Source: Penicillus capitatus (taxonomy: Eukaryota; Plantae; Chlorophyta). Taken from it: a stretch of 64,000 nt of DNA. The notes beneath the pieces are model-generated. The model worked only from the letters and a program-made list of their open reading frames with translations, was not told the DNA's origin and did not search any database. This document shows, in pieces, positions 13,998 through 47,500 of the stretch. Where the stretch lies: assembly GCA_965649825.1 (NCBI GenBank), contig OZ287705.1, positions 310,001 through 374,000 of the forward strand. The letters run 5' to 3'. Made by a program: the position numbers and the translations under genes. Within the stretch, counting starts at the first letter, position 1. Each line of letters opens with the position of its first letter.

Positions 13998-13998
13998 T

Positions 13999-14625: not shown

Positions 14626-14643
14626 TGGGCGCACCCGCATTCC
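14626..14643 (-). other. Gypsy motif at the PPT position (non-polypurine, ends in CCA)
   Basis: The sense strand reads GGAATGCGGGTGCGCCCA|TGTGAA, and the TRIM carries the same motif. Confidence 0.75.
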
Positions 14644-14732
14644 CGTTGCGCAAACTCCGATGTGCGGAGCAAAGAAGAAAACCAGCCCACACAGCCTACC
14701 TAGTTAAAATACTGATGACAGCAGATGGTTCT

Positions 14733-15752: not shown

Positions 15753-16025
15753 GAGCGAGCAAATGGTGAAATCCCGGTGCGGGCGGTCCCTTTATACCCC
15801 CGTAACCTCCGAGGACACGTGCCCAGCGCGCGCCCTGACTGGCGGTTATCCTATGGTTCGCCCAAAGGTCATGGCATCCGTCGGGAGCTTCGCTCCGCTG
15901 GAGGAAGCTATCTTCCAACCATCGGGAGTTTCCCTACGCATTTGGTCATCCGCCGCAAACCGTTATGAACTTTGGAAGACAAGGGTGTATCCGTCAGCAA
16001 CCCGTCGGATTATCTAATGAGTGCG

Positions 16026-21916: not shown

Positions 21917-22415
21917 TTCACAAGCGCAGCGGAAGTCTTGGAAATAGAAGGAGTGATGAGCGGTTCTTGAGGGGTTAGCGACGTTTTGGGAAGTTCAGAG
22001 GTTGCAGCCAAGAGACAACTTGTTACAACTGAGAAGTAGACAGCGAATGTTTTGACGGATTGTATGTGATTCAGAACACAAGTGCAAACTTTGATGTTTT
22101 TTACGAAAGGTGTTTTTATGTGTCAAAACCTTGCTTAAATACTCCGACCCCGATGTGACGACAGGAAAATCAGCTGAACTTCAAGAGTGAGTTCGCAATG
22201 AGGTTCCCACTGAAACCAGGTAATTCATCATGAACTTCTAGAAGTTTCCTAGGAACTTCTTAGGAACTCACTCCCAGTCACCATTACTTATTCGCGACTC
22301 AGCAGCGACGGTTACGTCGCACAGCCAAAGACGCGACAAGTGCCAAGTGACAGGAATATCATTATTACAGAGACGTCCCATCACCGTTTTGTCAGAATTG
22401 CGCCATTCTTTCACA
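21789..22415 (-). repeat. Gypsy 5' LTR; TATTTAA at 22135-22141 and a 3-unit HSE-like motif at 22235-22249
   Basis: Direct repeat of 13999-14625, followed on the minus strand by the PBS. Confidence 0.97.
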
Positions 22416-26814: not shown

Positions 26815-29800
26815 ATGCGCATGATAAGAAACGGACTGGCTGTCGCTGGTGCCATCCTCTTTCTCCTTGTCTGGGCCGTCGTCAGTCAAACGCCGATCGC
26901 AGGTAATTCCTGACATTCACGAGCAGACGAGCATTCCTTCATGACACAAAGTCCTTTCTCGGCTTGGACCCTCGTCGCGCATCGCATCTTTTCTGCTCGT
27001 CTTCCGTTCGCTTCTTTGTATCTGTGGATACGTCGTCGACTGCGTCTGTGTGCAGACTCGAGATGCAAACTCCCTGAAGACGTTAAAGAAGAACTCCGCG
27101 TCGGTGAAGATCGGACATGGCGTATCACCGAAGCGCTCCAAGAACAGCACGGCATTCAGCAAATCATCGATTGCGCAGAACAAGGCGACGTCGTATCGCT
27201 GGATACTTCGCTGGCGATTCGACCGTCGACGAGAATCGTGATTCAGCGCGATGTGACCATAGTGGGAGGCCAGCGACTCGGCGGACGATCTCCGACGAAG
27301 CGAACTGCGTTCATCTGCCCTCCAGACAAAGGACTGTTTCTTCTGAAGTGCGTCTCGCCTGTCTTCCGCTTCACAAACACACTGTGGACTGCAGAAGCGG
27401 CTTCTCCTTGGTCAACGTTGTTATTAAAGACTGCCATCTGACCGAGGAGCACAAAGTCGCGGCCATCATCGAAGCGGACTCCTGCCAGCAGTCATCTTTT
27501 GTGAGGCCCAAAGTGTATCTTTCCAACGTGCAGTTCCAAAACAACACGAATCGCGGCGGATCTGCGGGTCTCGTCGTGCAAGGTCCGTCGTGTGACGGCG
27601 TGGTCGAACTGCTCGACGTCGCATTCAAGGAGAACGTGTATTCCAAAGCATCCGTGTTGGCGAGAGAGAACACTTTGACGGACGTTCGAGTTGTCGGCAA
27701 TCGAAGAATTGCTAACAACAACCAGGAGACGTCTTTCTTTTGCCTTCCCGACAATTCCTCATCAAAGGTGACGAAAATGACGGCGAAGGACAACGCGAAT
27801 GCGGGCGTTCTTTACGTCGAACGGGGGGAGCTGAACGTTTCGTCCTCTCTCTTCCAGAACAACGCCGGAAAATGGAACGCGGTCGTCGAGACTTTGTCGT
27901 CTTCGCTGATCGTGCGTGAAACGCGTTTTCTCGACAATTCCTGCAAGTGCCGCGCCGTGGCAGTCTTCGGACATCAACCACTGTCGTTTGACTTTTCGTC
28001 TTGTACTTTCGCTGGCAACGTCGCTGACGGCAAGGACAGTGGCGTTGTCTATGCGACGAATCCGCGCGTCCTGCGTTTTTTCCTATGCGATTTCGTCGAC
28101 AACGTCATACGCAGTTCGAATGGAAGGACGGTTGCGTTAGATGGGCTTGACTCGGAGACAAAGGAGGAAGGGCGAGAGATCACGACGGTCGTGGAATTCC
28201 TCCGCTGTCGGTTTTTGAGAAACGCGGCTGCCTATGTGACGGCCGTGCGCCTTTATGAAGTCCGCGCACGAACAGTTTTCTTCCATTCCTGTCACGTGCA
28301 GAACAACACGACACCGGACGATTCCCCTGTGCATCGACAGACAGTGGTCCTTGTGAAGGATAGTTTTCTGCACAATCTCACGATGGCGAACTGCACGTTC
28401 GAATCGAACGACTGCACTCGACATGTGCTGTCGCTCTTCTCCGCCAATGGCACGTTCTGGATCCGAAACACCTCCTTCGCCGACAACAGAACTCCTCAGG
28501 CTGGGCAAGGGAGCACGCTGAATGTACAGAGAAGAACAGTGAGCAACGAGCACTTGTTGGCGCAGAGCGCCTCTGACAATGGAGCCGTCCTCAGTGTGGA
28601 AGATTCAGAGTTCCGAAGAAATGGTGGCGACTTGGCTGGCGGCGCCGTGCATGTGGCAGATGAACAAACGCGGGTGGAGCTGCTCGACAGTCGATTCCTG
28701 GATAATCGCGCTGAGAAGGGCGGGGCGGTTTTCGTAGAGAATGCTCGCTTAGTGGATATCGACAACTGCACTTTCGCGCGGAATAGTGCCACAGATGTTG
28801 GCGGAGCGATACGTCTGCAGAGTGGTAGCGCAGAAATCCGGAAGTGCACTTTCGTTGAGAACACGGGCGAGCACGGCGGTGCGATCGATACCATGACGAA
28901 CATCCTGGTCCAGGACTCAGAGTTCTTCGGAAACAAGGCCAGCATCAGAGGAGGCGCCATGAGTATCAGATGCCTAGAATCTTTTCCTTGCAAGCCACGC
29001 ATTCTCGGATCCGCATTCTGGCGAAATCGAGCAGGCAGATCTGGCGGCGCTCTCCACGTGTACGCGAGCGGAACGTTGCCACTAGAGAACTGTCGTTTCA
29101 TCGAGAACAATGCGACATATGGTGGAGGCATTTCGCTGTTCCGTGTGCGGAAGAGTGCGGGGTGGTACATAACGAACTCGAATTTCTCTCGGAATAGTGC
29201 AGCGACAGGAGGTAAGGCACGAGATCCTTCCTCGTTCAAATCTAACTGGGCTGCCTTGATCGCAGGAGCGATTTCGATAATGGACAGTGCGGAAGAGCAA
29301 TCCTCGAATCGGTCGCAGAACGACGTTGCCGGGAGGTTCTACTTCAGCGGCACCGTCATCACGCAGAACACCGCGACGCTGTCGGGCGCCGGCATCTTCG
29401 CCGAAGATCCATCTCTCCTCAGCATCGACGGGTCATCGGTAAACGTGCCAGAGAAAACGTTCAACTGCCAAACCATGGAGACACCGCCGAGCAGTGCTCT
29501 CGGGAAGATTTTTCGAAACAATACTGTCGTCGGAGGACACGAAGAGAATCTGGCAAGTTTGCCTGTCGGCTTCTGCGTCTCTGTCTTCAAAGGAGGTCGA
29601 CTGGCAGACACCATCTCGGAAGACAGTACGTACGTGCTGCCTCGGTGGCGAAGCGGCGACGATTTCCCAGTCCTGCGCGTGATGATGTACGACCCTTTTG
29701 CGAACATCTTTGCGCATACCAGGAATCGAGACTGCAAGAGAGGGACGACGTCCGTCGACGAGCCAGAGGAGGCGTACGAGCAGCCCGTCAATGCAGTGCT

Positions 29801-31952
29801 GTTTTCAGAAGCGGAAGATGCGTCTATGGGCCGCTTCTTGATGAACAGCGTGTACGAAGACATCTCCTCCGGCGGCGGTAACATATCCGTGGGCAATCCC
29901 TACGTCAAACCAGGACGTTATCGACTCACACTGCTGGTTGAGGGATTCGAGCAACAGAACGTGACGCTGGAAGTCCACGTCCGCGACTGCACCATCGACG
30001 AAGAGTCCGACCGCGACGACACATTCTGTCGTCCTTGTGACTCGAACCAATACAACTTCCAATCGGCAGGCTTGGCGTGGAAGTGCACACTCTGTCCAGA
30101 GAACGCCGACTGCACGACGGAGTTCATACTCCCGAGAAAAGGTTTCTGGAACGCGTTTCCGTGCTCCAACCAGATGGAGCGATGCGTCTACAAAGACGCG
30201 TGCAACTTCACTGGATCGGACAAACTGGCGGCGCTGACCGAGTTTGAAACGCCTTGCGTCTTCAGCGACGACGCCATCGAGCAGTACCAATCCAGTGAGT
30301 GCGCCGAGGAGTACGAGGGTCCGCTGTGCGGGTCCTGTCTTGACGACGCAGGCCGACTGGGAAGCTTCGTCTGCGCGCCCTGTATGTCGGAGTTTCTTTC
30401 CGTCGTCGGGCTTCTTGGCCTTCTGGTTCTCCAGTTGATCCTCGCCCTCTTGCCGATGCGAGAGACACTGAACGCCGAGCGCGATCATCAGGAGGACAGA
30501 ATGACGGCTTTGAGTTTTATGCGACGAACGAGAAGAGCGACACGTCCCCCTGGAAGATACGAATTCGCTGGCGGCGGGCGGAGTTCTCGAGTGAGAACCG
30601 CGATCGTGCGAACTGGAACGACGACGATCCGCTCGAACGCCCGCAAAGCGAGCAGAGCCAAGCAATGTTTTCTTGGAACGTTAAAGGTAACCCTGTCCTC
30701 CGGACGGCGGTCGAATCTCAGTCCTGTCTTATAGATCACTATCAATTTTCTCCAAACAGTGGCTATTGCAGCCTCGTTGGACGTCTCGTGGAACTTCACC
30801 GCCATCTCTTTCTTCAGAACCTGGGGTAAGTAATCGTACTCGAAGAAAGAACGTTTCTATGCAAACTGCGCCTTTTCAGATTCTATGAGCGCTGCTGCCT
30901 CCGTCGGGGCTTCGTTGTTTCTGGACTGTTTGCTCTCCGGCAAAAGTGGAGCTCCACGAACTGTCAAGCGCCAGATCATCGTTGCACTGCTACCAGAGAT
31001 CGTCGCCCTCGTCATTTCGTTGTTCTTTCTTCTGAGAGAGCTAAAGGGGGACAAGGACTGGAACAGACTCCTCAGAAGAGCCATCCTGGCCCACATCGTC
31101 GTCGGCTACAACTCTTATCTCGTACTGGTAAAGGTCGCCATCGATGCATTCAACTGCGTCCGCGTGCACGATGGCATCCGTCTCGAAGACATCGGCATGA
31201 CGCATCGCTACTGGATCGCAGACACGTCTGTGGAGTGCTTCAGCAGCACCCATCTGAACTTCACTCTTGCCGTCTCCGTCCCACTGCTTCTCTTCGCCAT
31301 CCTGTTTCCACTTCTGCTGGTCATTCTTCTGGAACGCGCTCGTGGACAAAACAAGCTCTCGTCCAAGTGGACGCAGGAGACGATGGGATTCCTGTTTATC
31401 GTTTTCGAGGAGAACTACGTCTACTGGGATTGTCTGATCCTCTTGCGAAAGGCCATTCTCTCGGTCATCATCGTCTTCGCCTACAGACTCGGAGGCAATC
31501 TCCAAGGTCTTCTCGTAATGGCCGTCCTCGTCATCGCTCTCTTTGTGCAAACGTATCTCGGTCCTTTCAAAAAGGAACTGGTCAGTTTGAACGTACTGGA
31601 AAGCGTTTCCCTTCTGGTGAGTTTCTTTACTTTTATGTGTGGACTCATTCTGAACAACGAGAGATTTCACGGTGTCCTCATGAAGGGACTCGTCACGGCA
31701 CTGCTGCTCAGCAGCAACGTCGGACTTTTTGTCATTCTCGTTTTCTTCTTGGCGCGAAGCAAGTTGGAACAAGTCAGATTGGAACTTAAGATGATGCAAG
31801 CTGATGCCGGCAACGGGTCTCTTCACCAAATCGCATGGTCTTATCTGACATTCCAGATTGCACGTCTCCGGGGACTGATTGATAAGCAGGACTCGGTCGA
31901 CGACGCGGAAGAGTTAGTTCCGCAACCATCCATTGAGCTTTCGGGGGTGTGA
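26815..31952 (+). CDS. Large cell-surface membrane protein: signal peptide, pectin-lyase-like beta-helix (Pmp-type GGA[IV]/FxxN repeats), Cys-rich region and multi-pass TM C-terminus
   Basis: Exon 1 (26815-26902) encodes MRMIRNGLAVAGAILFLLVWAVVSQ. Repeats of the form F..N.A..GGA[IV] and the Cys-rich CRPC..CTLCPENADC..GPLCGSC follow, then a hydrophobic ORF at 30885-31952. GT-AG introns include 27348-27394. Confidence 0.85.
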
Positions 31953-32919
31953 ACAGCAACTGCTATTCTCCTGTCTCACAAACAAGCGTTTCACAGCGTC
32001 TTTCTTTGCAAATATTCTTTCTCTTCTGCACATTCGTTTGTGTAGCGAACTGAAAGAGCGTTGCTGCTCGATCACGAGTTGCATATTATGGTCGTAAGGG
32101 GGGCGGTTATGGTCTACTGTTTCTTTGAATGGAAAACGTCGAAGATGTTGTGCAGCTTTCGTTGTAAACGGCGTTTGAGTGTTTGGTGTGTCTTTGCGTG
32201 TCTATTGGACGGCATCCATTTCGAAGGTATCCATTATTCAGGGTAGTCTACGCGAGCGGCATGCCGACTCACTGATTTTGATAACTGAAAACAGAATCTT
32301 CTACGCGCAAACAGATTCTGCCTGGACCTTGCAGTCAAGTCACGCATCGTCATAAAAGAAGCTTTCATCATCAGGCCATCCGCCAGCCTAGGAATCACCG
32401 CTGTCATTGCTGCCGACCGGCGAGCGACCTCAGACGCAAACTTCTTCACGACTAAGACAATCGCCAGTGGCGACAGGCAACCAAAAAACGTTCACCCGAG
32501 AGCGGTCTTCGGTACTCGGTAAGTACTCCGGAAAGCGGATAGCTTGAACTAACCCTCTTTGTCACAATGGCTTTTCAGCTGTCGCCTCAAACTCCGTTAA
32601 ATTGTAGGAAAGTCTCGCCGACAGAGCCAACAGAACGAACGACCTACGAGATCTTGTGTGGACTGTGGATTGTCTAGCAGAACGGTGAGTGATACTGTCG
32701 CCGTCTTCAACACTCAAGGACGTAGCTGTCGAGACGAAGCGTGAATGTTTTACATTCTTGTCATCATATTCTGTTGTAAGAACATAAAGGCAGTAAATAG
32801 TTTAGCTTTCGGAGCTGCTGGTTAGTTACAACGCTAGTAAACTTATCTACACAATCTAAAAACGCAAGTACGAAAACTGATACGTCAAAAGACGTGGTCT
32901 TTCGGTGACATCAGCGTCG

Positions 32920-33003
32920 TGGCTAGGGTGACTGCTCAGTCGAGTGACCGAACAGTTTCGACGGCGCCACCCGTCTCATCAGACCCCTTGAGAGTTTTTG
33001 CCG
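32920..33003 (-). ncRNA. Type I hammerhead ribozyme HH1; predicted cleavage between 32930 and 32929
   Basis: Minus strand: ggggt-CUGAUGA-gacgg(gtggcg)ccgtc-GAA-actgttcggtc(actc)gactgagcagt-C-accc. The core is complete, stem III has 11 bp, the triplet is GUC, and stem I is accc/gggt. Confidence 0.9.
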
Positions 33004-33087
33004 ATTTAGCGCTATCCAGTCCCGCCACGAGGAGGCACGGCTCGACGATGCGTTGGCAAACGCACCGCCGTTGGGACCACAATATTT

Positions 33088-33552
33088 GGTGGTAATCACG
33101 AAATGAAATGCCATTTTATGGGATAATCACGAAAGTGCCTTGGGTAATCACGAAATGAAATGCCATTTTTTGGGATAATCACGAAAGTGCCTTGGGTAAT
33201 CACGAAATGAAATGCCATTTTTGTTTTTTCTTTTTTTTTTTTTTTGTTTTTTCTTTTTTTTCTTTTTTGATTTTTTGGGGTAATCACGAAATGAAATGCC
33301 ATTTTTTGGGGTAATCACGAAATGAAATGCCATTCCTTGGGGTGGTAATCACGAAATGAAATGCCATTCCTTGGGGTGGTAATCACGAAATGAAATGCCA
33401 TTCCTTGGGGTGGTAATCACGAAATGAAATGCCATTCCTTGGGGTGGTAATCACGAAATGAAATGCCATTCCTTGGGGTGGTAATCACGAAATGAAATGC
33501 CATTCCTTGGGGTGGTAATCACGAAATGAAATGCCATTTTGGGGTAATCACG
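33088..33552. repeat. 34-bp minisatellite (ggtaatcacgaaatgaaatgccattccttggggt), about 7 near-perfect units plus variant units and a T-rich insert
   Basis: The 34-nt period is readable from 33311 onward. Variant units occupy 33088-33310. Confidence 0.95.
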
Positions 33553-34125
33553 AGGATGTCCTTCCTTCCGGGATTCCTCAACCAGGTCGAAGGGAAGGCC
33601 GCCTACAAGGGACGACCCTCACCCCGCCTTCGGGACTAACGGGTGGGCCCGACGCCGTAGAAGCCGCTCAACAGTCCGCGCCACAACCGTCGCACGATTG
33701 CCGCCATCGACGGCAGCGTCTCATGCGCTGTGTGAAAGGTTCTTTATCGACGGACAACCGAACGACGAGTTCGACGTAGTGGGACCGGAGCTGCGCAACT
33801 GTGGGGGAGTATCTCCCGGAAAGAAGGGCCATCCGAGGATGTCCCCCCAATCCGAGATTCCTCAACCAGGTCGAAGCAAAGGCCGCCTACAGGAGACGAC
33901 CCTCACCCCGCCTTCGGGACTAACGGGTGGGCCCGACGCCGCAGAAGCCGCTCAACGGCCCCCGCCACAACCGCCGCACGATTGCCGCCGTTCTCGGCAG
34001 CGTCTCATGCGCTGTGGTAAGGTCTTCGATAGTACAATACTTCAATATGACGGACAACCGAACGACGCGTTCGACGCATCCGGACTGGAGCTGCGCAACT
34101 ACGGGGGAGTATCTCCCGGAAAGAA
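33552..34125. repeat. Two diverged ~283-bp tandem units (starting at 33552 and 33835)
   Basis: Both units share gaggatgtcc...gattcctcaaccaggtcgaag...cttcgggactaacgggtgggcccgacgcc...gggggagtatctcccggaaagaa. Confidence 0.9.
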
Positions 34126-34151
34126 AGACGAAAAATGGTACGCGTCATCAC

Positions 34152-34470
34152 TTATATACCCCTTCAGATGATGTGACAGCGTCACATCGTTTTGTCGCGC
34201 AATCAGCCAATCACGACGCGAATTCGGAATACTAACCGTCGGAAGAAGAAGCTGGAAGGAAGACGTCGATGCAGCCGATAGCCAATCACGTTGCAGTATC
34301 GGAATATTCCATCTGTCACATCAGAATATTCCATCTGTCACGTCAGAATAATCCATCTCCATCTGTCACATCGGTTTCTCGTCGATTCAGCCACTCAGCG
34401 CGCATCTTTGGCAGTCTAACCGTCCTCAAGGTGACGTTGACAGGGTCGCGTCAACGTCCAAGTATTTAAG
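34152..34470. promoter_or_regulatory. Candidate divergent Pol II promoter
   Basis: TATATAA on the minus strand (34152-34158) and TATTTAA on the plus strand (34463-34469). Two agccaatca CCAAT boxes (~34205, ~34280) and several GTCACA motifs lie between them. The same TATTTAA occurs in both LTR families. Confidence 0.55.
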
Positions 34471-34928
34471 GGGCTCCGCGACGCGCATTTCGTCTTTTGT
34501 CGTTAGGGCGGTTCTACTGGTGGGTTCTCGCTCCCGGGTTTCGGCTCGGAACACAGAACGCCAAAAACCGGGCCAGTGCTGCCAGGCTATAAGCCGCCGA
34601 CCCGGCCCGTCGGTGTTGCGAGGCGCCCCTTCGGGAGGTGCTGCTGACCATCACCTTCCCGCCGCGGTTGGCGCGTGCAAAGGTCGTTAGACGCTGGATT
34701 CGGAGTGTCTAAGGCGTGTTGCGAGGCATCACTTAGGTGGCGCTGCTGACCTCCACACCTGGCTCCGAACTTTGCGCTCCGCCGCACGCTTAAGACATAC
34801 GGCTCCACTGCGCTAATGCCACGCCGCCTTCGGGTGACGCGTCACTGGTTCAGTGGGGAGGGTGGGCTTGGGGTTATCCTAGCCAATCCGGATCTTTCCG
34901 GATCCCGTCGAGGGTTTTGGTGCCTCGA

Positions 34929-34986
34929 CGTGAAGGGGTCTGACGAGACGGGTGGCGCCGTCGAAACCCTTAGGTCTTTTGTTTAC
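34929..34986 (+). ncRNA. Minimal hammerhead HH2; predicted cleavage after 34976, with a weak stem I
   Basis: CUGACGA-gacgg(gtggcg)ccgtc-GAA-acc(ctta)ggt-C. Stem I is mostly G-U pairs with a U-U mismatch next to the core. Confidence 0.65.
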
Positions 34987-35151
34987 GTGTCTCCATACCG
35001 CGCGCGCTCGATTTACGCGTTCCATTCTCGCTCTCCGTGTCGGAGCTCGGCCGATGTCAGACGCATGAGTAGATCTGCCGCCACCATACGCCGCATCACG
35101 GTTCTTCTGCGTCGAACGCGTCGCTGCTGCGTTCTGGATCGTGCCGAGTCG

Positions 35152-35230
35152 TGGCAAATGGGTCTGACGAGACGGGTGGCGCCGTCGAAACCGCAGAGTG
35201 CTTCGTTGCATTCGGTGGTCACCCTAGCCA
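35152..35230 (+). ncRNA. Type I hammerhead ribozyme HH3; predicted cleavage after 35220
   Basis: tggc-aaat-gggt-CUGACGA-gacgg(gtggcg)ccgtc-GAA-accgcagagtgc(ttcgtt)gcattcggtggt-C-accc-ta-gcca. All three stems form, and stem I has an internal loop. Confidence 0.9.
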
Positions 35231-36836
35231 GTCGTTTTTACTTTTTTGCCTCTCTACTGCTTATTTTCCATCCATCTGTCGGTCTTCAAGCGTCAACGCT
35301 GAAAACCCTAACAGCCGACGACAATACGATCTACGTGTATATGAGCGCTCCCTACGTTTTTAAAGCCTTGCAAAGCAAACGAAAGCACCACTGCGCTGTG
35401 TCTCTTATGCGTCCGTCCGCCTGTGAAGTGGTCAAACCCTAGTTTGTTTATTGTAAATGCAAACCTGGAGCCGATGCATTTTTGAAGAGGAGTACTACTG
35501 GAAAGTAGACTTCTGCCTCTGTCTGGTCCAGAGTGACAGAGCCTTCCTCTGGTTTTCTGAAGGATGGATTTTTCAAATTTTCCTTGTGACAGCAAAGGTC
35601 ATGACAGAAACAGACAATCAGCACATCGACCTTGGCGTTCATCCAAACATCGACGAAGCGATACCACGTTGCAAGGGATAATGGGCCCGTAAAGCTTTCG
35701 AGGAACATTCTCGCAGCATGAACTGGCGATTCTCAAAGTTTGCCGTTGCATTGGTCGATTCCAACACCTGAGCTCTTCATTCGTTTTTTAACAAGAGTTC
35801 ACTCCCTCAGCACTGTCACCGTTTTCACGTCAAGAAACGTTCTAAACGCGCATCTTCGTTCTCCTCGCGTCGTCACACAGACAGAGATTGATCTCACGAG
35901 AACACACTCAAAGAATGGTGTTTGTGGCGAATACATAACACAGGCTTTTTGGTACAGAGCTGAGGTCGCAGCTCCCCTGCGTTCATGTCTCACTAGTTTT
36001 GAATAACTGACACACTCAGTGCGATGCTAACCGCCATTGAAAATGACGAAAACCAAATCGTCACTTTGTACAGGACAGGTCTTCTGCCTCGTTTCGCAGC
36101 TGAGTTTGTTGAGGACACGCCGACAGGCAGCAGTCTCTCGTCAACGCGGACTTCCAATAGAGAGTGGACGCGCACGGTGTAGAAATAGACGCATCCTTTT
36201 TACTTCACCAGACCTCCGCCGTCCATACCGGGTGCGTCGCGCGATGACAGAAACTGCTTCGAATCGGCAATGTCGACGCGGCCGGTCATGCTTACTAAGG
36301 ACGTGACTGATGCAAGCATCGTTCTTCTTAATCAATGTTTTCCCCGTTCGTGCTTAGTCTGTTGCATAAACAGGACAGGAAGTCAAGCAATCCACGGCCT
36401 TTTCCGCTGAACGTTCTTGCAAAGCGGACACCGTCTTTTCCGCTTTTCGTGAGCCTCCCTCCTCCAGCCACGACAATCATTGCATCTCGCGGCCCCATCA
36501 CTCTCTGTCGGCGTGCCGCATCCGACAAGACTGTCCACAAGACGGCCGATACCCTTGCCGCAGGAGATAGAAACCTCTCGCCGTCGACGCGAGTTCACTT
36601 TAGCACAGTAAGTGCGTCGAGCTTCTCTCTCACAGCAGGAACGGCTTCCTTTATCGCGGCGGTTTTGCCAAGGTTCTCAACAAGACTCGACAGTCGCGGC
36701 GTCTGACAACGGACAGACGAAGAAGCAAAACTCGGGACGGTGAAAGCAACACCTTCCGTCCTCGGAACGCCGACGGACTATTCAACCTTTTATCCCTCCC
36801 TCTGAGCAACAAAGCAGTCGGTCCTCAGGGAGTCGA

Positions 36837-39107
36837 ATGGCCTTTGGTCAGTTAGACATGCGAGCGTCGTTGGTGGAAGACGAGAATCTCGGGAGAAATT
36901 CGACCGCGTGTCGTTCGGCGCCGAGTCTGGACGATTCGGAAGACATGTGGTTTGAAGGTCTGCATCCAGTCTACAGCGACGAATCCGAGGTCACACAATA
37001 CGTCAGCGTCAACTCTCACTTCAGTAAGATCCAGATTCGAGCGTGGCAGCAATGATGAATGACGCGTTGTCCTTAGCCAACGATGAATCCTTCGAGTCGC
37101 CGAAGACCGAGACACAGAAGGTCCATTCCGCTGTGGATGTCGAACAGGTGCGCCCGTGCTATGTGCCTTCAGTCTTCAGACTGTGTGTGCGTGGAGCGTG
37201 CCAAATGGAACGGCGAGGCGTCGAAAGCATCTATGGAGCCCGGTCGATCACCACCAATCTGTCAGCACGTTCGGTCAAACGCATCACGGGCTGCCGTGTT
37301 GGCCGACCTATACGAAGGACAGATCTTTGCAAGAAAGTCCGCTCAAATGTGCCATAAGGGAGAGGCCGCGAGTTGCTGTGTCCTGCAGGTATGTGATCGA
37401 AAGTGCTCCGCTCGTGGAGACACCGAACAGTCGTTGCGCCGTCAACGCGATCACCGGAGAATGTGTCTACCTCCAATTCTTTCCAGACATGCAGAACGAG
37501 TTTGAAAACTGCATCAGAATGCACAACGCACTGTCAGAGAGCCAATTCATTTGCCGGTACTCAACGACGCACTCTCCGGTGGACGACTGTCGCACGAAAG
37601 CTGCGTCGCAGGTTGCTCGAAGTCATCACAGACGAACGCCACTATCCCCCGTGCTTGATACTGGAGAGAGGCGACTACACTCTACTGGAGAGACTGAGGA
37701 AGGATCCGCCATCCATGATCCGCCGTCTGGCCGTTCTCTATGCGGTGAGGCGACGCCATTCCGTTCTGATCTGGCCTGATCGACCTTTCCGCAGATCCTC
37801 GAGGCGCTGGAAGATGTCCACGATCTCGGCGTGACGCACGGGCGCCTGGAGCCTGCGAACGTCATGTGGTTCTCGGCCGACTGCACCTGGAAGCTGATCG
37901 ACCTGAAGTGCGCCTCGATGGCCGGAGACTGGACGGTGGTGGACGCTGCCGTTGGTAAGTACTCGGCTCCCGAGATCCGCTACGCCGAGCGAGTGGATCG
38001 GCAGCGCGTCCACCTGGATCCTCCGGCCGACATGTGGTCTTTCGGCGTCATCGCCCTGGAGACACTGACGGGTACGCCATTCACTCTCGTTCTGCGAGTC
38101 CATATTTGGCGGCCTTGTCCAGGGAGGACCTTTCTGGATGCCAGCTGTGTCCAGAAGTGCATCGTCGACGACGTCTGGGCCTCCAATCTGGACGCCGATG
38201 ACAACGACAGGTGGCTCTTCGCCGATCCAGGCGGTCGACACGGGGGCAGCGACGAGCAGAGGTACTACAGATTCGTTCGGAAGCTCCTCTGCAGGAGCCC
38301 GAAGCACCGAAGCACGGCGACGGATGCACTCGGAGACGTCCTGTTCCGAAACGTAGAAGACGCCGGCCAGCGAAGCGACTCCCTCGTCCAGGTGCGCCCT
38401 ATCTCACTACTGATCTCGCCCTTCTCCACCATCTTTCTCTGTAGAGATCCCACAACGCTCTTCACACGGATCCCTTTCTCCTGGCGGTGATCGGTGCGCA
38501 GCTGCGGGTGGACGTCAAGGTGGAGGTCCTTTCGGACAGTGGTCTGTCCGACGAGCCGTTTCACTCGAGGGAAGCATACCGTGCCTACACAGAAGATGAC
38601 GAAGATCTCGGCGACGCGATTATCTACATACTGAGATTCCGGGAGCGCTTTCGGCTGCGCCTAACCATCTCATACGCCGAAGGCTGTCAGCTTCCGATCC
38701 AGGAAATCGAATCCGTCTCCATAAAGACCAGCGAAGACGAGATCGTTGCCCTGGAGTTCCACACCGTGTACGCCGACAGCGATCGGTTGGAGACTGCCGT
38801 CCTCGTGGATCCGAGAGCGTTCGGGGGGCACTTTGCCGTCTGCCCGATGTACGGAACGGTGAATAAGCGCTACAGGAGGTCGACGCTGCAGGTGGCGTTC
38901 CGCATAGGCGACGACTCGAACGCCGTCGTGGCGAAGAACTTCGATCTCCACTTCCTCATCGTGGGATCCCACAGGAGACTGCGCCGCTACCGACTGGCGA
39001 GAACGATTCGGCAGCAGTGGTCGCTGCTGCCGAAGCCGGCCAAAAGGGCGGTCCGTCTGGTCTGTCATGGCGTCTGGAAGGCGGCGGAATGCGTCATGCC
39101 GTGCTGA
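36837..39107 (+). CDS. Multi-exon predicted pseudokinase K4, the closest paralogue of K1, with the recurrent C-terminal domain
   Basis: Motifs CVYLQF, PPCLILERG, HGRLEPANVMWF, LIDL, YSAPE, DMWSFGVIALETLT and DPGGRHGGSDEQRY. The domain lies in ORF 38487-39107. The start is approximate. Confidence 0.85.
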
Positions 39108-41529
39108 CCGGTTTAGTAGACAGGAACAGAAGAGCTGTAATCATCAAGTACCAAGAACGAGAGGGTGCCTCTCTGCACACCCTCTCAACCCCTAGTATAG
39201 ACGAGCGAAGTTTTAGTGGGTAAAAGGAACGGTGATTCTGTCACTTCTTTGGGCAGGCGAGTACATATTCGACACCTGATTCGATGCATTGTCAATATCT
39301 TGTTAACTTGATTGTTTGGTGCCTCCAATGGCGCGATGGAAGTAGTGTGCGTCGGGCGAGGTCTGGTGGACCATCCTTGTTAAATGGCGTTTCTCTCCTT
39401 GAACGTTTTCGGACTTAAGTTGCACATTGGTCGGGATCTTAAAGCCTTCGTCATCTGAGAAACGAGTTCATTCGCGGCAATAGACGGAAAGCGAACCATT
39501 GCTCAAGTGAAGGCCGCGACTACTTGTGCGGCATTCCGACAGTTCGAAGAGTGCCTTTCCTTCCAGAAGCAAGGTCGGACGGATACTCTTCACGCAGAAA
39601 CGCGCGTTAAATGGGTACAATTGAAGGCACAGGATTGGCGGTGCGCGGCCCGGTCACTGACTACGTCGACTGATGAATGGATGGCCTCTGGACAGTACAG
39701 ATTGGTCTCCGAACTGTCCGTCGAATTCCATGCTCTGATGTGACTTGAGCTCGAAGGGGCATCGTGATCCATGTCTCTTCCGTGCCATACGATTCTGCTC
39801 CGCGCCGTATGCACGCATCTAAACACGTCGCTATTTTCTACGGCACTAATTGTATCTGGCGAAGAGTCTGCCATCAAACATCCACATCTGTTCGCCAGAG
39901 TGCTAGGAATGCACCTGCATCCTTGCTGAAAGCTCTATTCCTATTGAGCTGGGTGAGTCTTAGTTCCTTAGCAGTTCTTCTAGCCTAATGGCCAGTAGAC
40001 TTGTTTCGCGAACGCCTGTGAATGTTCATGAAAGATGTGTCTATCGTCCGCTCCCGCACCTGTCGGTCGGAAAGCGCTCAATTCCCGAAAACTCGTTACC
40101 GGTTAGGTATTCCCGGGATCAAATCCCAGCGGGAACATTCCATCAACGCCTCGAATCTTCTTCTAGATTACGCAGATGTGACGGGTGATAAGCAAAGTGT
40201 TTTCCTCCGGTGTGCGAGCGCTGAAACCAGACGCTGCGATCTTGATGCGCTTCTGCTAAGGTTCTTACAAACCAGCTCATCTGCTCGCCTTCTCTTTGTG
40301 TCGGAAACTCTACGCATCATGAGAATGCGAGGCAAGTTTGCAGCTGAAAGATGTCTAAAGCTCTGTGCAAGCGTAGAACAGTTTCTAAGCTTCAGGTGCG
40401 TGGAGAATGCAAGACACTTCATGAGAAAGAGGGAGGCTAAAAGCGCCATAGGTAGTGAGATGCACCCGCCCTCGGCCGCCGGCGACCAGAGGCGCCGGGA
40501 TGCTTACTCTGATTGGCGGTGATAAGGCTGTGCTAACTTGTAGTGCGTGTTAATCATTGCGTGCAGGAATGATCTTAGCCTCCCCAATACGGTCGAGGGC
40601 GTCGTATGCGTGAGTCGCATACGGCGTTCTCGGCCGTACTTGCTTTCATATATGCGCGTTACACCTAAGGCCGCAGTCGAATGGAAATGGATATCTGATT
40701 CTTGACTTGTCATATGGGCGTTGTTGAAAGCATCTGCTGACCAGCGCTGCTCTGTAACGGCTCAAAGAAAGCTCTCGACTGTTCTGCTGGGCAAAGTTGC
40801 AGAGAAGATATCAGTTGTCAACGGCACGTTGCTCCAGAGAAAGTTTCTGGTAAGTGTCGTTTCAGTCTACGGTCGAGGGCGTCGTCACTGCCCGGTGTGA
40901 TCTCCATGAGCTTCGTGTTGCGTAGGTGGATGACAGAACCTGGCGTCGATGAAGCGTTTGCGATGCATTTCGATACAGCAAAACAACCAACCGGGCTGCT
41001 CGAGAATATCTGTCGTTTCGTTCACGACGTCAAAATGACTGGATGGATGAGGGTGACGCTTTTGCTTCTGCAGACGAACGACTGGACGACGCGTTGAACT
41101 CGACAGAATCCTTCGTGAACGGAGAACCAGAGAGGGCGATGAGGTTGCAAGGTCTCCTCACTCCATTACAGTATTCGATTATCGCAGGACATCCAGTAAA
41201 GAATCTCCTGAGCGAATTAAATAGACAACTTGAATAATACCATATTCCGCTTCACCAGTTTGTCAACCATGACCTGAGAACCGGCCATTCTTTACGCCTC
41301 AGTTAATTGATCCTGCCAAATGTGCCGATTCGTGATCAACATTCAACAGAAGCTCTAAAATGGTAAAGACAGGGAAAGCCAATCTGAGTTCGCTGGCCTG
41401 CAAAACAATGAACCCTCCAATAACGTTCCTTCTTCATATGAGACAAATTGTAAGACGTCAGCATTCCACTTTAGTTCTTGCAAAGTTCTGCATGGGCGGA
41501 AACTTGATGGAAAAAACAAGTGTATGTGT

Positions 41530-44500
41530 TCAGGGAAGCAAGTCTGCGCTCTCGCATCTGCGCAGCTTGTATGGGTAATCAACGTCCAGATCGTTGTCTA
41601 CATCGTCGTCCAGATCGTTGTCCGCGCTTGGCCCTTCCACGGAGCTCATGCATCTGCGCAGCTTTGAGGCGTGCTCCTTCTTCGATGCACCGGAGACACG
41701 TATCTTCTCGTCGACGCTCTTGCATCGGCGCAGCATTTGGAAAGGTGATGCCTTGTCGTCCAACACCTCTTCGATGACGATTTGATTCGCATCTTCGTCG
41801 AATATGAGACTCTCGGTCGTCGTCTTTTTGACAGCCGTTTCCGACGGTGGCAACTCTCTGGCGAGCATGGCGCTCTTGCATCGGCGCACCTTTAGACTCT
41901 TCCTTTCGTTCGAGGTGTCGTGCATGATGATCCGATCCACCACTTCTCGACACACAGGGCACCGGATCGCTTTCCCTCTTCGCAGATTGTCCTTCAACAC
42001 GCTCAGTGCACAAGAATCGCAGTAGCACTTGTGTCTCCTGGTGCAGCAGCATGCGAGATTAGAACGGATACTGAGAAATCTGCTCTTACGTGTCTCCGTG
42101 GACGGCAGAGCAAGTGGGGATTGCTGCTTCTGGGTCAGGATCCGTGTCCTTGGACGATGCACCTTTACTCTTCTTCGAGCGATCTCCCAATTTGATGTCT
42201 TCTTTCTTTGCCTTGGGAGCAGAACTGTCTGTTTTCTGTGCAGGTTCTGCTGACTTGCTAGCATCTTCCTTCACTTCTGGAGTAGAACTCTTTGTTTTTC
42301 GTGTGGAGTCTACTGCTTTGGTGGATTCTTCTTTTGTTTTTGAGGTTAAGCTCCTGGACTTCTTTGTGTTGTCTTTTGCCCTACTGGCTTCCTTAGAAGT
42401 TAAACCACTTGTCTTTTGTGCCTTGTCGCCTTCCTTACAGACTGCTTTCTTCGCTGTGGAGGATGTGCCTTTGGTCTTCTGCGTCCGTTCTGCCGCCTTG
42501 CTAACCTCGCTCTTCACTTTGCATGGCATGCACTCCGTGATCTCCTCCTCGACAGTTCTCGGCTTCCAGGGAGCGGCGTTCATGATGACGCGATCGACCG
42601 GCTTACGGCAGAATGGGAAGGGACACACGCGTGTTTCCCGACCCTTCAACTTCTTGACAATCTTTTTGCTATAGCCCTCAGTGCAATAGCAGAGGTGCCT
42701 CCTGCAACAAATGCTGGAGTACAACACAGTTCGTTAAACGAGAAGAGACACACCTGCTTTCGTGATCGATGTCTGGGGGCATCTGGCAGATCGGACATTG
42801 CTTATCCCAAGAGAACGTTGCACTCTCACATCTGTACAGTAGCGGAACTTGTCGCAGAGTCCATGTGTCCTCGACGACAGTCTGATCGGATGACGCCTGC
42901 TGCGTTGGAGTCTTCACAGTGCTGTAGGCCTGGACCGCCTCGGATAGCTTGTTGTAGACAGTCTTTGCTTTTTCGTGCATACCGATCATTACGTCTCCCC
43001 ACCATGTGATCTGTTTGACTTTAACAACAGTCAGAGTCGTCGACTCTTGCTGATCTGGGGTCTCGGCGTCGCAGTTGCCTAACAACTCCTTTACCATCTC
43101 TTCTAAAGCGGACATTGCCTCCTCGCATAATTCAACCACTGAGCATGTCTTCACGTTCTGTCCGCCTTCCTCGATTTTCTGACTCGATGACTCTTGCTGA
43201 AGTTGGACCTCTGCTCCGGAGTAGTCCGAAATCACATAAACTAGCTTCTTAAAAGCAGATAATGCTTTCATGTATCTGCGCAGCGTAAGACTCCTTTGTG
43301 TGTTCTGTTTTGTTTTGACAACTGTCTGACTGGATGACTCTCGCTGACCAGGAGGGACCTTGGCTCCGTGAACAGCCGGGGCTTTTTCGAGTAGCTTTCC
43401 GATAGCAGACATTGTTTCGTTGTATCTACGGATCGCTAATTCTCTCTTCGTATTCAATCCGCCTTCATCACCTGTCTGATTCGGCGGCTCTCGCTGTACT
43501 GGGACCACGGATGTATGTATGCCAGAAATCTTTGCTTCCAGCTTCTCCCGAACAATCACTGCGCTCTTGCATCTGCGCAGAGCTGGGATTCGCTCATCGT
43601 CAACAGCATCCTTGACGACGATGCGGTCCACCTCTCTCCGACATACTGGACACTTGTGCTTGCACTTCTTGCCTAACACCGCAAATTCTTTGCATGCACA
43701 GACCTGACAGTAGCATGTGCATTTCCTGGACACTAACTTAAGCAACAAGCTATAAGCGTTTCTGTGATTGTACGTGGATCCGTGCAGCACTGAGCACGTT
43801 GGGTCATCAGCTCCACACACATAACATTTCGATGTCGTCTTCTCGACTGGCGATATCTTCTTTGGACACGTCTTGCTGACGATGCAGTCTTGAACAACCT
43901 TTCCCTTCAGTCTTCTGGCAAGCTCTCTGCCACAGTCCGTGCAGTAGCAAAGGTGTTTCCTGACACAGCCAGACATGCAGCAGAAAGCAGAATGACGGCA
44001 GTACTACGTGTTGCCGTGTCTGACGGCACAGGTAGGATCGATAAGGCATGTGGGACATCGCTCGAAGTAGGGACCGTCGTTCATGATGACTCTCTCCACC
44101 AACAGTTCACACACGGGGCACTTGATCTCCTGCTCATCAAGTAGCGCCTCCTTCAACTTCTTGGCGCATTTGGTGCAGTAGCACAGATGCTTTCTGGCAG
44201 TTGGGCATCAGTGGACAGTGAAGGAGGGAGTGTTTTACGTGTTTCCGTGACGCACAGAGCATGTTGGGTCCTTTTGGCAGGATTCGCACTGCTGCACGCG
44301 ATCGACATCGAGGAGGGTGGCTCTCGCAGTCAATGTGACCCAGCCCCTTTCCAGGAATCCGATGGACTCGTCCGCCAACTGGTCGTTCGTTAAGAACTTG
44401 TGAGCGCCCATGCCTGTTAGTGCTTCGATGCTCTCGGTGAATTCTGTAAAATCCTCTTAGCGATGAAGGTTTACTGAAAAGGCGCGCCTACTTCGAACTT

Positions 44501-47500
44501 TGTCCTCAGAAGCTTTTTTTGTCGATTTGTTATTCATTGCGCGGATCTCTGTTCTCACGCGGACAGAATGATCTTGACAATTGAAGAGGTAAAATCCGAT
44601 GTTGTCGGAGTTCGACGTATTTCCCTTCGGCACAAGTTTCAACCTCCTGCGACAACAATCGCGTATGCAACCTGACGAGGGTAGAGCCAGGAGATGTCGT
44701 ACGCACCACTTGGTTTCTCCAATATTGAAAAACTCGGACCAAAGTACTGATGGACATAGACTTGGCAATCCCTTCAGCTTCCACTGCAGACATGAAATAA
44801 CGATGTGCATCGAAGAGGAAGAAGTCGAAATTACGGTGCATGTGGCTGTTTTTCGTTTCACTGAAACCGTCCATCGCTCATTGTCCTGAAGCTTGAGTCT
44901 GATCTCAGCACGCACGAGGAAAAAGTCCTTCTTCAAGAATCTCTCTGACGTATTGTTTACTCTCGCAGCAGAGCAAAGGGAGCGCCCCAAATTGTCCGCG
45001 CACGCAGCGGGAAAGAACTCTTCGAAGCCTCCTTCGAATAGAATAACAGTCGTTTGAGTGACTTTTATCTCCAGCGGATTCATCACCTCTGAATACACTA
45101 TTTTCATGTTCTTCGTTTACAATGGTAAAGCACCAATGAGCCGTTGCCCTGGTTAGGCCCTTGTTCCACAGGTAAACATCCAGGTTTCCATCAAAGTGGT
45201 TCCAAATTGACATACTCCTGAAACATCAACCGTCTTAAGGACGTCGTTATTGATGACTAATCTGACCATTCTCTGCGGTCTAGATCGAACGGATTGGTAT
45301 GGAAGCACGCATCAAATGTCCCCAGAAAGCTTCGAGGCACTCTGCACTGTGAAAGAGAAGAAACAGGTCACGACGCTGCGGCGGTTGTTTGGCAGACCGG
45401 ACTTCGTAGGTGGCGAAGTACTTGTACTTGTTCAGAACGAAAGTGTAAGAAATTGCATAGGTCATTTGTGGAGAGTAGGAGTAAAAATCTTTGTACACTT
45501 CACATCCCTCTACACTCAGAGACATTGATGCAGAAAAACGTTAATCGACGACAGACCTTCGACCTGCATCAGTTCGTGAGGGTCGGGCTCCTCCCATCGA
45601 CGAGGACTCTGGTTTAGACGTCTTGGTACGCGCATGATCTCCTCATCGAACTCTGCTTCATTAAACAGCTTTATCTTGATCTCGAACATCGTCCATCCAT
45701 CTTTGACAAAGCCCAAGGCTTCGTCCTCCAGTTGTCTCTTAAGGGATAAGTGAAGTAACCACATTTCAATCTCCCGACGGAGTACACTATGACACCCTGA
45801 ACTGCGCTTTGTGATGTGGGACACAGGAGACGAGGTTACTCTTTAATCTGACTCTGTTGGAGTCGGTATGACGGAGAAAGTTGACTTCCAAAAACATTCG
45901 GATGAGGTTCTCTGTGCTCTGCTTTCGAATGGAAATGCTTGGACGGCTCATCATAGTCGTGCCGTTGGCGTAAAAGAACACTTGCCTAGTAGTCACAGGG
46001 AAACTCGAAACGCACGCCATGGCACTCGGGAAACACTTACAGTGCTGAGTCTCCAACTCTGATGATTTCAGTCGCGACACGCCATGGACTCATTTCTCTC
46101 AGGAATCTCACCTTCCACTAGATTCCAGCTCCAGTGTGAGACGATGCATCTAAGCATTGAGCCAGGATACCTGGCAGGTTGCAGTGTTTCCATCCACGGT
46201 AACGTCACATATTTCATTATCTTCCTGTTTCACTCTCATATCCAGACGAACAAGAAAATAGCCACGAAGCAGGAATCCATCATCCGGTAACGCTGTCTTC
46301 GTGTATGGAAGAAGTTTGGCTTCGCAACAGTCATCGATGAACGAGAACTCATGAAGGGTGCCTGTCAAACACCTCTCAACTTCGAAGCATATGCAGAATC
46401 TGTCCTCCTTACCTGTGCCTTTACTCTGTCCCGCGTCGTTATAGTTCTCCACCAGCCAGAATCCAAGTTGCACTTCCACTTGAGTCTCATTCTTTGATAA
46501 AAGGCAAGCACACAGAGATCCGTTTTTATCGCGCTTCATTCCAATACACCTGGAACACGTCAGGTAGTCGACAAAACGGAAAAGTGTGTTCTTTGTACCA
46601 TAATCTGTCATCCACCTCGAATGCATTTGTGAAGATCTGTCCGTTCTCCTGTTTCAGAAAGGATTGATGCACTTTCCACTGTTCGAGCACAAACCGCCAT
46701 CGCAGTCAGATGGAGACTTTCAATCTCTCACTTCATAGCGTGCGAACCACTTGTTTCTTGTTAGCCTGTAGCAATGATCGATTTTATCAATCCGTCCAAC
46801 GCCCCCTGTCATAAGGCGATCAAGTGTTTGCCGTTCTTGGAAAACTGTCAGTACCTTGATGTTGGACTTCAGTGCCATCATCGATCTTGGGTAAACGATG
46901 CGTCGGAAGTCGTCTGAGAACTGAAGGCGGCGCGTTTCTAAAACCCTTGTCGCTCACCAGGGCGATCTTCACAGAGAGGTTCAGCCAGCCATCCTCCACT
47001 GCCGAAGACAACTCGTCCGACAAATCCTTCTCTTTGAGGCAGCGGACCAATCCCTTAGCGGCGCCAACGTTGATCAGCTCCGAAAACTCTGAAGAAAGGG
47101 GTCAAAACAATCTGATAGAGACGTAAAGAACTTGAGATGCTGTTGTCTGCAGAGGAATCACTTCGTCTAAGGCGGATTTCACCCTCAAAGCGAGCATTCC
47201 GGCCGCTCATATTCGCAAGAAGAATGCTCAGACCATCAGCACCGAAACCTCCTCCCTCCTTGCACAGCCTCAGCTCCCTATGCAGTGGACACGAGACCGA
47301 TCAGCATGGAACGCAAGGCAGCGTTATCCATAACTCACATGTCGCGGCCTGCGATGTTGAAGTGATCAGTTCTTACGATTGCTGGACTCATCTCCCAGAC
47401 ATGTTTAATGCTCCACTGACATGATCCACTTCTCGGCGATCAGAACGTGTTTTGTGAGACTTACTTCACACAACACTGTCCTCTTTCGAGTTGGCATCCT

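Follow-up and report, generated by a model that had tools for sequence, protein, structure and literature searches.

A probable retrozyme-like non-coding repeat with a two-way TATA promoter and outward-facing hammerhead ribozymes in a 64-kb stretch of Penicillus capitatus DNA

The stretch analysed here, 64,000 nucleotides of Penicillus capitatus contig OZ287705.1 (positions 310,001 to 374,000; hereafter the window, in whose own numbering all positions are given), is eukaryote-like DNA with a GC content of about 52%. At 32880-35447 it carries two back-to-back TATA promoters and, on either side of them, two non-coding arms with hammerhead ribozyme sequences that face outward. A sequence-only reading of this place had proposed a central divergent promoter serving a pair of non-coding RNAs (ncRNAs), each ended by a hammerhead of its own, and the TATA boxes, two CCAAT boxes and GTCACA motifs on which it was built can all be read directly in the sequence (Table 1). 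Seen together with related DNA, 32880-35447 is probably one unit of a multi-copy, retrozyme-like non-coding family, in which a two-way TATA promoter would drive two outward transcripts that are cut by hammerheads.

The left and right promoters together form a 318-bp two-way region with a composite core design: GTCAYRTC, a gap of 9-10 nt, GTATWWAA, a further 21-23 nt and then CATTT(T)CGTCTTT. The left promoter has this design complete. Across the window, GTATWWAA occurs eight times in 64 kb where 1.5 would be expected, a count reached by 0 of 100 shuffles; four of the eight copies lie within long terminal repeats (LTRs) and two are the TATA pair at 34152 and 34463. TGTCAYATC is found 12 times against 1.06 expected, and GTCAYRTC-N(4-30)-TATWWAA four times against 0.00, namely in the left promoter, in both LTRs of a Gypsy-type retrotransposon and at 48322-48298, while AGCCAATCAC by itself showed no enrichment across the window. 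The arrangement GTCACATC-N9-GTATTTAA stands in both Gypsy LTRs of the window and in a related LTR of locus L004 (labels of this form denote related contigs and loci), and both arms of the unit follow the same design. Since box, N9 spacer and TATA are common to Gypsy LTRs whose copies are identical, the design would represent a working promoter of the RNA polymerase II (Pol II) type, and such an LTR may be the best positive control that sequence can offer. The GTCACATC 8-mer is itself abundant (29 copies in the window, where a random 8-mer would be expected roughly twice) and similarly frequent in both related organisms, lying mostly between genes and often as divergent pairs; in this lineage it probably serves as a general site for a transcription factor. 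Between the core promoters, 22-nt repeats of the form GAATATTCC-N-TGTCACRTC lie at 34298-34358, and the CCAAT-GAATAYTCC-TGTCAYATC module of this shared region is 78% identical to L004 9641-9690; the shared region is also the most variable part when the window is compared with its allele, L003.

Downstream of either TATA box, the conserved CATTT(T)CGTCTTT (CATTTCGTCTTTT on the plus strand and CCATTTTTCGTCTTT on the minus strand) is likely to mark the start region. Its distance from the TATA box is 23 nt in 9 of 9 right-type (R-type) and 21 nt in 4 of 4 left-type (L-type) arms caught by the scan, and in the fetched loci TTTCGTCTTT occurs only at the start-motif sites of arms. Start sites had earlier been placed near 34125 and 34495; starts on both sides of the region remain the expectation, and the conserved motif shifts the likely positions towards the TATA boxes by about 10 nt. 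The T-runs that immediately follow the predicted starts speak against RNA polymerase III (Pol III). A plant-like small nuclear RNA promoter of the Pol III kind, with GTCACATCG as upstream sequence element (USE) beside the TATA box, was considered and rejected on the same ground, the 8-mer being common (29 in the window) and the design recurring in Gypsy LTRs.

The three hammerheads of the unit, one in the left arm and two in the right, all have a CUGA(U/C)GAG...CGAAAC core, in agreement with the CUGANGA...GAAA consensus, the A15.1-U16.1 pair and the NUH cleavage triplet that characterise hammerheads. At the DNA level CTGAYGAG-N(4-30)-CGAAAC is present three times in the window against 0.05 expected, with cores at 32982-32955 (-), 34940-34967 (+) and 35164-35191 (+), and a covariance model made from family members returns exactly three window hammerheads and none elsewhere in the window. 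The left and right ones are of type I. For the left, the minimum-free-energy fold is the hammerhead (88.2 bits with the family covariance model), and for the right it is the centroid fold (97.9 bits); their helix III sequences differ between the L- and R-type, and both pair. Over 13 type I copies and 17 pairs, 99.5% of cells are paired with two compensatory pairs, the covariation score is reached by 0 of 500 shuffles, and slid controls pair in at most 53%. The middle hammerhead is type III-like, its cleavage site lying upstream of the core at GGGGU(C/U)↓AUCCUAGCC (the arrow marks the predicted cut), with GGGGU/ACCCU as helix III and a branched helix I of two hairpins (34876-34939). Over 12 copies and 27 pairs, 97.3% of cells are paired against at most 59% in slid controls; these copies are too alike for covariation to show, and there is almost none. 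The family consensus at the middle site is canonical GUC↓A, present in 7 of the 12 copies, and in L004 the type III-like fold is the unconstrained minimum-free-energy structure. Just 36 nt are common to the two plus-strand hammerheads. The 3' ends that had been proposed for the two transcripts, 32930 and 35220, coincide exactly with the predicted type I cleavage sites (GUC↓A).

Taken together, these features suggest how the unit may work. In an arm, about 135 nt of upstream sequence with CCAAT and GTCACATC boxes would lead into a core promoter, followed by a body whose length varies, then by one or two hammerheads and last by a short conserved tail, and the window unit would be a leftward L-type arm and a rightward R-type arm joined head to head. 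Pol II would start near 34137 (-) and near 34487 (+). The left transcript would be cut by its type I hammerhead after C32930 to give an RNA of about 1.2 kb, and the right transcript would be cut twice, at 34875/34876 by the type III-like and at 35220/35221 by the type I hammerhead, to give a capped RNA of about 389 nt with a G-rich 3' tract, a 345-nt RNA and a tail of about 225 nt. The lengths given in the sequence-only reading, about 1.2 kb and 0.7 kb, agree with the predicted 1,209 nt leftward and 735 nt rightward; the rightward RNA would also occur at about 389-390 nt, as set by the first cut. Each transcript had been given one hammerhead; the right arm has two, so that three RNA pieces would be expected in place of one 0.7-kb RNA.

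In the left arm, the 5' and 3' segments of the body match the locus L010 of species B at 77-85%, and between them lie expandable repeats: a 52-nt array (33091-33222), a 34-nt array (33279-33545) and a duplicated unit of about 284-300 nt (33551-34125). A T-rich run of 59 nt (33218-33276, A-rich in the transcript) separates the two tandem arrays; it is mostly missing in allele L003, where the numbers of 34-nt and 52-nt repeats differ too, and the repeat array is unstable. The left body has no open reading frame (ORF) longer than 157 aa and no Pfam match. The possibility that the 284-nt repeats are decayed hammerhead units was rejected, as their alignments to the R arm look random. The hairpin region of the left tail is conserved among L-type arms. 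In the right arm, R-type bodies range from 190 to 543 nt among copies and differ in sequence too, and the block 34813-34970 is 85% identical to L004. The two same-strand cut sites, 345 nt apart, are kept in most R-type arms, and the interval between them (34876-35220) is the best-conserved stretch between species, with 70-74% identity to L010 and 74% to L014. Its predicted 5'-OH and 2',3'-cyclic phosphate ends make the 345-nt RNA a candidate for circularisation, which a tRNA-ligase-type enzyme might carry out. Further downstream, an island in the right tail (GUCRACRC..AAACCCUAA) is conserved in both organisms.

The hammerheads had also been credited with preventing read-through into the flanks. 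Copies of the unit remain homologous for about 50 nt beyond the left cut and about 225 nt beyond the right one, and the species share a conserved part of the right tail; the ribozymes would thus be internal processing sites and not the ends of the unit. A hammerhead cut, moreover, leaves a 5'-OH, a poor entry for the 5'-3' exonuclease that terminates Pol II. For both reasons a role in preventing read-through is unsupported.

The relatives are long contigs of two long-read metagenome assemblies in ENA (ERZ25074695 and ERZ26696514) and represent two related organisms. A spurious gene-caller ORF over the conserved block upstream of the middle ribozyme led to allele L003 and to L004, and a profile of this ORF, run against 1.8 billion representatives, to ten more proteins whose contigs are L010-L014. 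A concatenated six-frame peptide query for spurious ORFs over other copies gave no match; the exact ribozyme sequence was found 0 times in JGI metagenomes, viral contigs and GTDB genomes alike, and phage BLAST returned nothing. A looser ribozyme pattern matched JGI metagenomes once, at L009, a related core with a degenerate site. From the roughly 230 kb of related DNA fetched, about ten further transcription arms were recovered, with seven or eight units head to head and three arms solitary; copy number and the paired-to-solitary ratio are biased, the loci having been picked through a spurious ORF.

In the feature scan one layout recurs. It runs from a minus-strand hammerhead to a TATA and a box of the same strand, then to a plus-strand box, CCAAT, a second box and TATA, and on to the G-tract block, a plus-strand hammerhead, about 220 nt and another plus-strand hammerhead. 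Left/right pairs of this kind are found in the window and its allele L003, in L013, in L011 (two pairs) and in the second unit of L010. The first unit of L010 (L010u1) is a symmetric right/right pair with TATA boxes 130 nt apart; L012 has a right arm and a left-facing TATA, and no left hammerhead was found there; L004 and L014 hold three solitary arms in total. One of these, L014b, begins about 135 nt upstream of its own TATA, at the CCAAT boxes. The basic module is accordingly the arm, and head-to-head pairing is its commonest state without being obligatory. That back-to-back promoters with outward ribozymes occur in at least seven further units of the two related organisms is the main support for the central divergent promoter, and it is comparative evidence only. 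The right-promoter position bears a canonical GTCACATC-N9-GTATWTAA in allele L003 and in all paralogs. Between the window unit and L013 the identity is 86% over 2.39 kb, with homology from 32921 to 35253; the homology of the unit to L011 runs from 32879 to 35447. Compared with its allele, the unit differs mainly in the inter-promoter spacer and in the copy numbers of its tandem repeats, and the RNA bodies and ribozymes are almost unchanged. L010 was considered as a syntenic ortholog of the window locus and rejected: its flanking genes have no DNA similarity and the neighbouring protein is only 32% identical. L011 is the first 8.3 kb of a 128-kb contig (ERZ25074695 ctg339543), with its two units side by side at the very end, and the assembly breaks inside the right arm of the second; a break there hints that more copies follow or that the region is rich in repeats and possibly subtelomeric.

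Several observations fit a repeat or mobile element better than a single-copy pair of ncRNA genes, in that the family is multi-copy and individual copies are present in one place and absent from its counterpart. The contigs L001 and L002, syntenic with the window up to about 32744, lack the ribozyme unit at that place. Likewise, 1.5 kb of L004 (9514-11057), comprising one ribozyme arm and most of a Gypsy-type LTR, are absent from L007, a counterpart of 99.5% identity, as well as from L005 and L006, the L004-L007 comparison being one of copies of a duplicated segment that are 98-99.6% identical. The left junction in L004 recurs in L014. The junction repeat in L004 (CCAGCAACG/CCAGCGACG) measures 9 nt, is imperfect and lies within resident LTR-like sequence, and the last 68 nt of the L004 LTR are present, together with the gag-like sequence that follows, in the 'empty' copies too. 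Since the right junction thus falls within LTR/gag-like sequence that the empty copies have kept, ectopic recombination is as likely as insertion, and a clean 9-bp target-site duplication in L004 was set aside as ambiguous. Copy number, presence/absence differences between close relatives and a frequent Gypsy neighbourhood nevertheless lead us to read the family as a retrozyme-like selfish repeat and not as a host ncRNA gene pair.

The host-gene explanation would have ordinary Pol II genes whose hammerheads make non-polyadenylated 3' ends and whose copy number has grown through segmental duplication, and we regard it as rather unlikely. It draws on the conservation of the promoter, the G-tract block, the ribozymes and the tail island between two organisms whose neutral DNA is about 65-75% identical, on L-type arms in which the 5' and 3' segments are conserved and the middle is free to expand, and on the failure to find hallmarks of transposition. 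A selfish element would, however, keep its promoter and ribozymes equally well, whereas the RNA bodies differ among copies in length (190-543 nt) and sequence, no Rfam family is matched, and the unit is missing both at the syntenic place in related contigs and, as an arm, from a near-identical counterpart locus.

The ends of the unit carry an inverted repeat of 35-44 nt with 91-94% identity, which might be taken for the ribozyme-bearing terminal inverted repeats of an element that moves as DNA, or the whole for a decayed and untranscribed relic, the latter in keeping with a right box and a middle cleavage triplet that are sub-optimal in the window. Either would be very improbable: copy homology reaches past the inverted repeat on both sides and no target-site duplication accompanies it, solitary arms exist, the allele and paralogs keep every promoter and ribozyme feature, and the differences between the window and L003 avoid ribozymes and RNA bodies. 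At the homology boundaries, 32879 and 35447, neither a target-site duplication in general nor one of 4 bp was found.

A different origin is brought to mind by the AAACCCTAA island at 35303-35311, which resembles the C strand of telomere repeats and lies about 80 nt downstream of the R-type terminal cut in both organisms. It stands at the same place in L003 (10488), L011 (6580) and both arms of L010u1 (8489 (+) and 6808 (-)), and it occurs 11 times in the window and fetched loci against 2.2 expected, though CCCTAA is otherwise under-represented. Arrays of telomere repeats were not found in the window or fetched loci. Separately, a Blastocystis origin of the DNA, considered because GTTTGTT stands at the end of the right tail, was rejected, TGTTTGTT not being enriched. 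In Penelope-like elements (PLEs) that lack the endonuclease (EN-minus PLEs), hammerheads occur together with telomeric repeats in reverse complement (PMC8557442), and PLE insertions often come with an adjacent inverted, truncated copy and with hammerheads in their pseudo-LTRs (pLTRs). The head-to-head arms could by this account be an inverted 5'-truncated copy beside a pseudo-LTR in a non-autonomous PLE derivative, as the symmetric inverted pair L010u1, the inverted layout with ribozymes towards the ends and the telomere-complement-like box near a hammerhead would all suit. We give this little credence. Neither a PLE reverse transcriptase nor a GIY-YIG ORF turned up among the ORFs scanned and the precomputed Pfam labels of called genes in the window and loci, where every reverse-transcriptase and integrase gene seen was of Gypsy type (RVT_1 with rve). 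Ribozyme architecture differs as well, the hammerheads having a long helix III or a branched helix I in place of the minimal PLE type; the L and R arms belong to two sequence types, are not copies of one another and each keep an upstream promoter of their own; and the telomere-like box lies downstream of the cut instead of at the 3' end of the RNA.

Retrozymes are the closest known kind. The LTR retrozymes of plants have direct LTRs of about 300-400 bp that each contain a hammerhead, together with a primer-binding site (PBS), a polypurine tract (PPT) and a 4-bp target-site duplication (Cervera, Urbina and de la Pena 2016, PMC4918200). Like them, the family described here is non-coding and multi-copy, has its promoter inside the repeated unit, lives alongside Ty3/Gypsy elements and contains two hammerheads in direct orientation that bound an RNA of a few hundred nucleotides with ends suited to circularisation. 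Unlike them, it has no direct LTRs, no PBS or PPT of the resident Gypsy and no 4-bp target-site duplication; its arms are paired head to head with a two-way promoter at the centre, one arm combines a hammerhead of type I with a type III-like one, and the excised RNA is without the promoter. Direct LTRs holding hammerheads were looked for and not found, the only long direct repeats of the unit being its internal arrays, and the PPT GGAATGCGGGTGCGCCCA and PBS TGGTTTCGGAGCG occur only in the Gypsy-type element and its small companion. Metazoan non-LTR retrozymes and hammerhead satellites are arranged as head-to-tail tandem arrays; their helix III is minimal, and they lack a dedicated TATA promoter upstream (PMC7229834; bioRxiv 10.64898/2026.07.22.740005). 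The similarities are type I hammerheads, a monomer in the range of about 170-400 nt between cut sites, the lack of PBS and PPT and a proposed link to retroelements; the differences are a single monomer per arm, a long helix III, the TATA promoter and the inverted pairing. Head-to-tail arrays of monomers were not found here; whole units stand side by side in L010 and L011, but with their arms inverted. As in Avsunviroidae and viroid-like RNAs with hammerheads of both polarities, both strands of one unit bear hammerheads, but the present unit is DNA-encoded with its own promoters, measures 2.6 kb, would make divergent transcripts and not full-length complements, and has no rod-like or unusually stable fold. 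A retrozyme-like element with its own TATA promoter, two ribozyme topologies per arm and head-to-head pairing is thus a previously undescribed family.

Several points weigh against this assignment. The unit was found to have neither a clean target-site duplication nor an LTR, PBS or PPT. The predicted 345-nt RNA folds no more stably than shuffled sequence (z = +0.66) and has no viroid-like stable fold, unlike retrozyme and viroid-like circles. Searched with Rfam at the gathering score and at E <= 10, no hammerhead reaches the gathering score; the best alignment, of the left copy to the RAGATH-1 hammerhead, is in the same register but reaches 21.1 bits where 56.3 are needed (E = 0.093), and the plus-strand hammerheads have no Rfam hammerhead match even below threshold. 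The window copy has its own weaknesses, for it has a degenerate right box (GTCGCGTC), GUU at the middle site where the family has GUC, and a middle-hammerhead fold that lies 5.8 kcal/mol above the minimum-free-energy fold. A GUU triplet is permitted for a hammerhead and is usually slower; given the degenerate box and the GUU site, the window copy may be less active. Finally, transcription, start sites, polymerase, cleavage and circularisation have all been deduced from sequence and comparison.

A bolder version of the same idea concerns the G-quadruplex motif GGGGAGGGUGGGCUUGGGG, which lies at 34855-34873, directly upstream of the middle site. In 12 of 12 R-type arms the motif GGGG-N(1-2)-GGG-N-GGG-CUU-GGGG (GGGGAGGGTGGGCTTGGGG) has four invariant G-tracts and variable loops. 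The last G-tract doubles as the 5' strand of the middle hammerhead's helix III, so that quadruplex formation and cleavage would exclude each other. It is conceivable, and in our judgement doubtful, that the family constitutes a new class of ambisense ribozyme elements that carry promoters and in which a G-quadruplex gates the first hammerhead. Such a hammerhead would be a natural switch, controlled by cations or a helicase, between a read-through RNA and an excised 345-nt RNA that is possibly circular. Where units stand side by side, as in L010 and L011, cuts at successive same-strand sites could in addition release a full permuted unit including its promoter, which would open a copying route through circular RNA.

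Genome-encoded hammerheads are known mainly from plant LTR retrozymes, from animal satellite and PLE-linked repeats and from a few introns and untranslated regions, and their promoters are poorly defined or lie within an LTR. Here the TATA promoter is sharply defined and designed as in an active Gypsy LTR, two ribozyme topologies would share one transcript, and one short region would serve both strands. In the full-text literature, the combination of a bidirectional promoter with hammerheads was found in engineered constructs only. If expression were confirmed, the unit would correspond in nature to the engineered design in which a Pol II promoter produces a ribozyme-flanked RNA; retrozyme-like elements would then be known from a new eukaryotic lineage, and a testable candidate for a natural link between a G-quadruplex and a ribozyme would be at hand. 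The covariance models and anchor motifs can be used to find more such elements in long-read metagenomes.

Table 1. Positions of the ribozyme unit and of neighbouring elements in the window.
Feature	Positions	Strand	Details
Left-arm tail	32880..32929	(-)	Starts ACCCUAGCC = 3' strand of helix I; homology to L011 paralog until 32879, to L013 until 32921
Left hammerhead, type I, L-type helix III	32921..32994	(-)	Core CUGAUGAG...CGAAAC 32982-32955; predicted cut after C32930 (GUC↓A, 32932-32930)
Left-arm RNA body, non-coding (predicted)	32995..34137	(-)	Conserved 3' segment 32995-33078; conserved 5' segment ~34055-34128
Left core promoter (predicted)	34124..34177	(-)	GTCACATC 34177-34170, 10 nt, GTATATAA 34159-34152 (TATATAA 34158-34152), then CCATTTTTCGTCTTT 34138-34124
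Shared upstream region between core promoters	34178..34444	.	AGCCAATCA (CCAAT) boxes 34205-34213 and 34280-34288; GTCACATC at 34181 and 34365; GTCACATC or GTCACGTC (+) at 34181, 34315, 34337, 34365
Right core promoter (predicted)	34445..34498	(+)	GTCGCGTC 34445-34452 (degenerate box), 9 nt, GTATTTAA 34462-34469 (TATTTAA 34463-34469), then CATTTCGTCTTTT 34486-34498
Right-arm 5' RNA, ~389-390 nt, non-coding (predicted)	34487..34875	(+)	Variable body; last ~65 nt conserved, ending in G-quadruplex motif
Middle hammerhead, type III-like	34864..34977	(+)	Site GGGGUU↓A, predicted cut 34875/34876; core 34940-34967; helix III 3' strand ACCCU
345-nt RNA between the two plus-strand cut sites (predicted)	34876..35220	(+)	Deduced from the two sites; predicted ends 5'-OH and 2',3'-cyclic phosphate
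Right hammerhead, type I, R-type helix III	35152..35229	(+)	Core 35164-35191; predicted cut after C35220 (GUC↓A, 35218-35220)
Right-arm tail	35221..35447	(+)	ACCCUAGCC, pyrimidine-rich stretch, conserved island GUCAACGCUGAAAACCCUAACAG with AAACCCTAA at 35303-35311; copy homology ends near 35447
Gypsy-type LTR retrotransposon, apparently intact	13999-22415	(-)	627-bp LTRs 100% identical, TGTGAA...TTCACA
TRIM-like non-autonomous LTR element, 1,022 bp	12977-13998	(-)	Two 290-bp LTRs 100% identical, 442-bp interior
Two blocks lineage-specific against L001 and L002	32745-40038 and 40172-49165		First holds ribozyme unit and kinase gene 37156-39107

The Gypsy-type element in Table 1 has a gag ORF that begins within its 5' LTR (ATG at 21916) and an ORF for protease, reverse transcriptase, RNase H and integrase at 16026-18887, with TGGTTTCGGAGCG as PBS and GGAATGCGGGTGCGCCCA as PPT. 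Its identical LTRs point to recent activity, and its absence from the same site in the related contig L001 to a recent insertion. The small element that adjoins its 3' LTR, of the terminal-repeat retrotransposon in miniature (TRIM) kind, has the same PBS and PPT and is probably a parasite of the adjoining Gypsy family.

The genes of the window comprise protein-kinase paralogs and a beta-helix protein gene; the kinase gene at 37156-39107 is a 69%-identical paralog of that at 2155-4207. A recurring gene pair, made up of a large beta-helix/PMP-repeat protein and, after it, a multi-pass membrane protein of about 350 aa, exists as diverged paralogs in the window (27117-31952), L001 (10001-14927) and L010 (13433-16642). 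Such a pair has a ribozyme unit within 1-3 kb of it in two organisms, which may be a coincidence, since the pairs are paralogous (32% amino-acid identity). Within the roughly 16 kb (32745-49165) otherwise missing from the syntenic L001 and L002, a 133-nt island at 40039-40171 matches L001 15510-15642 with 85% identity; the island is no tRNA, and its best Rfam match is no better than E = 0.2. Upstream of the kinase gene lies an 80-nt inverted repeat (1258-1337 / 1528-1607, 89% complementary, arms 190 nt apart) with a TGTCACATC box at the end of its left arm, and towards the far end of the window is a tandem duplication of about 2.6 kb (57387-59989 / 60692-63307) with 71% identity.

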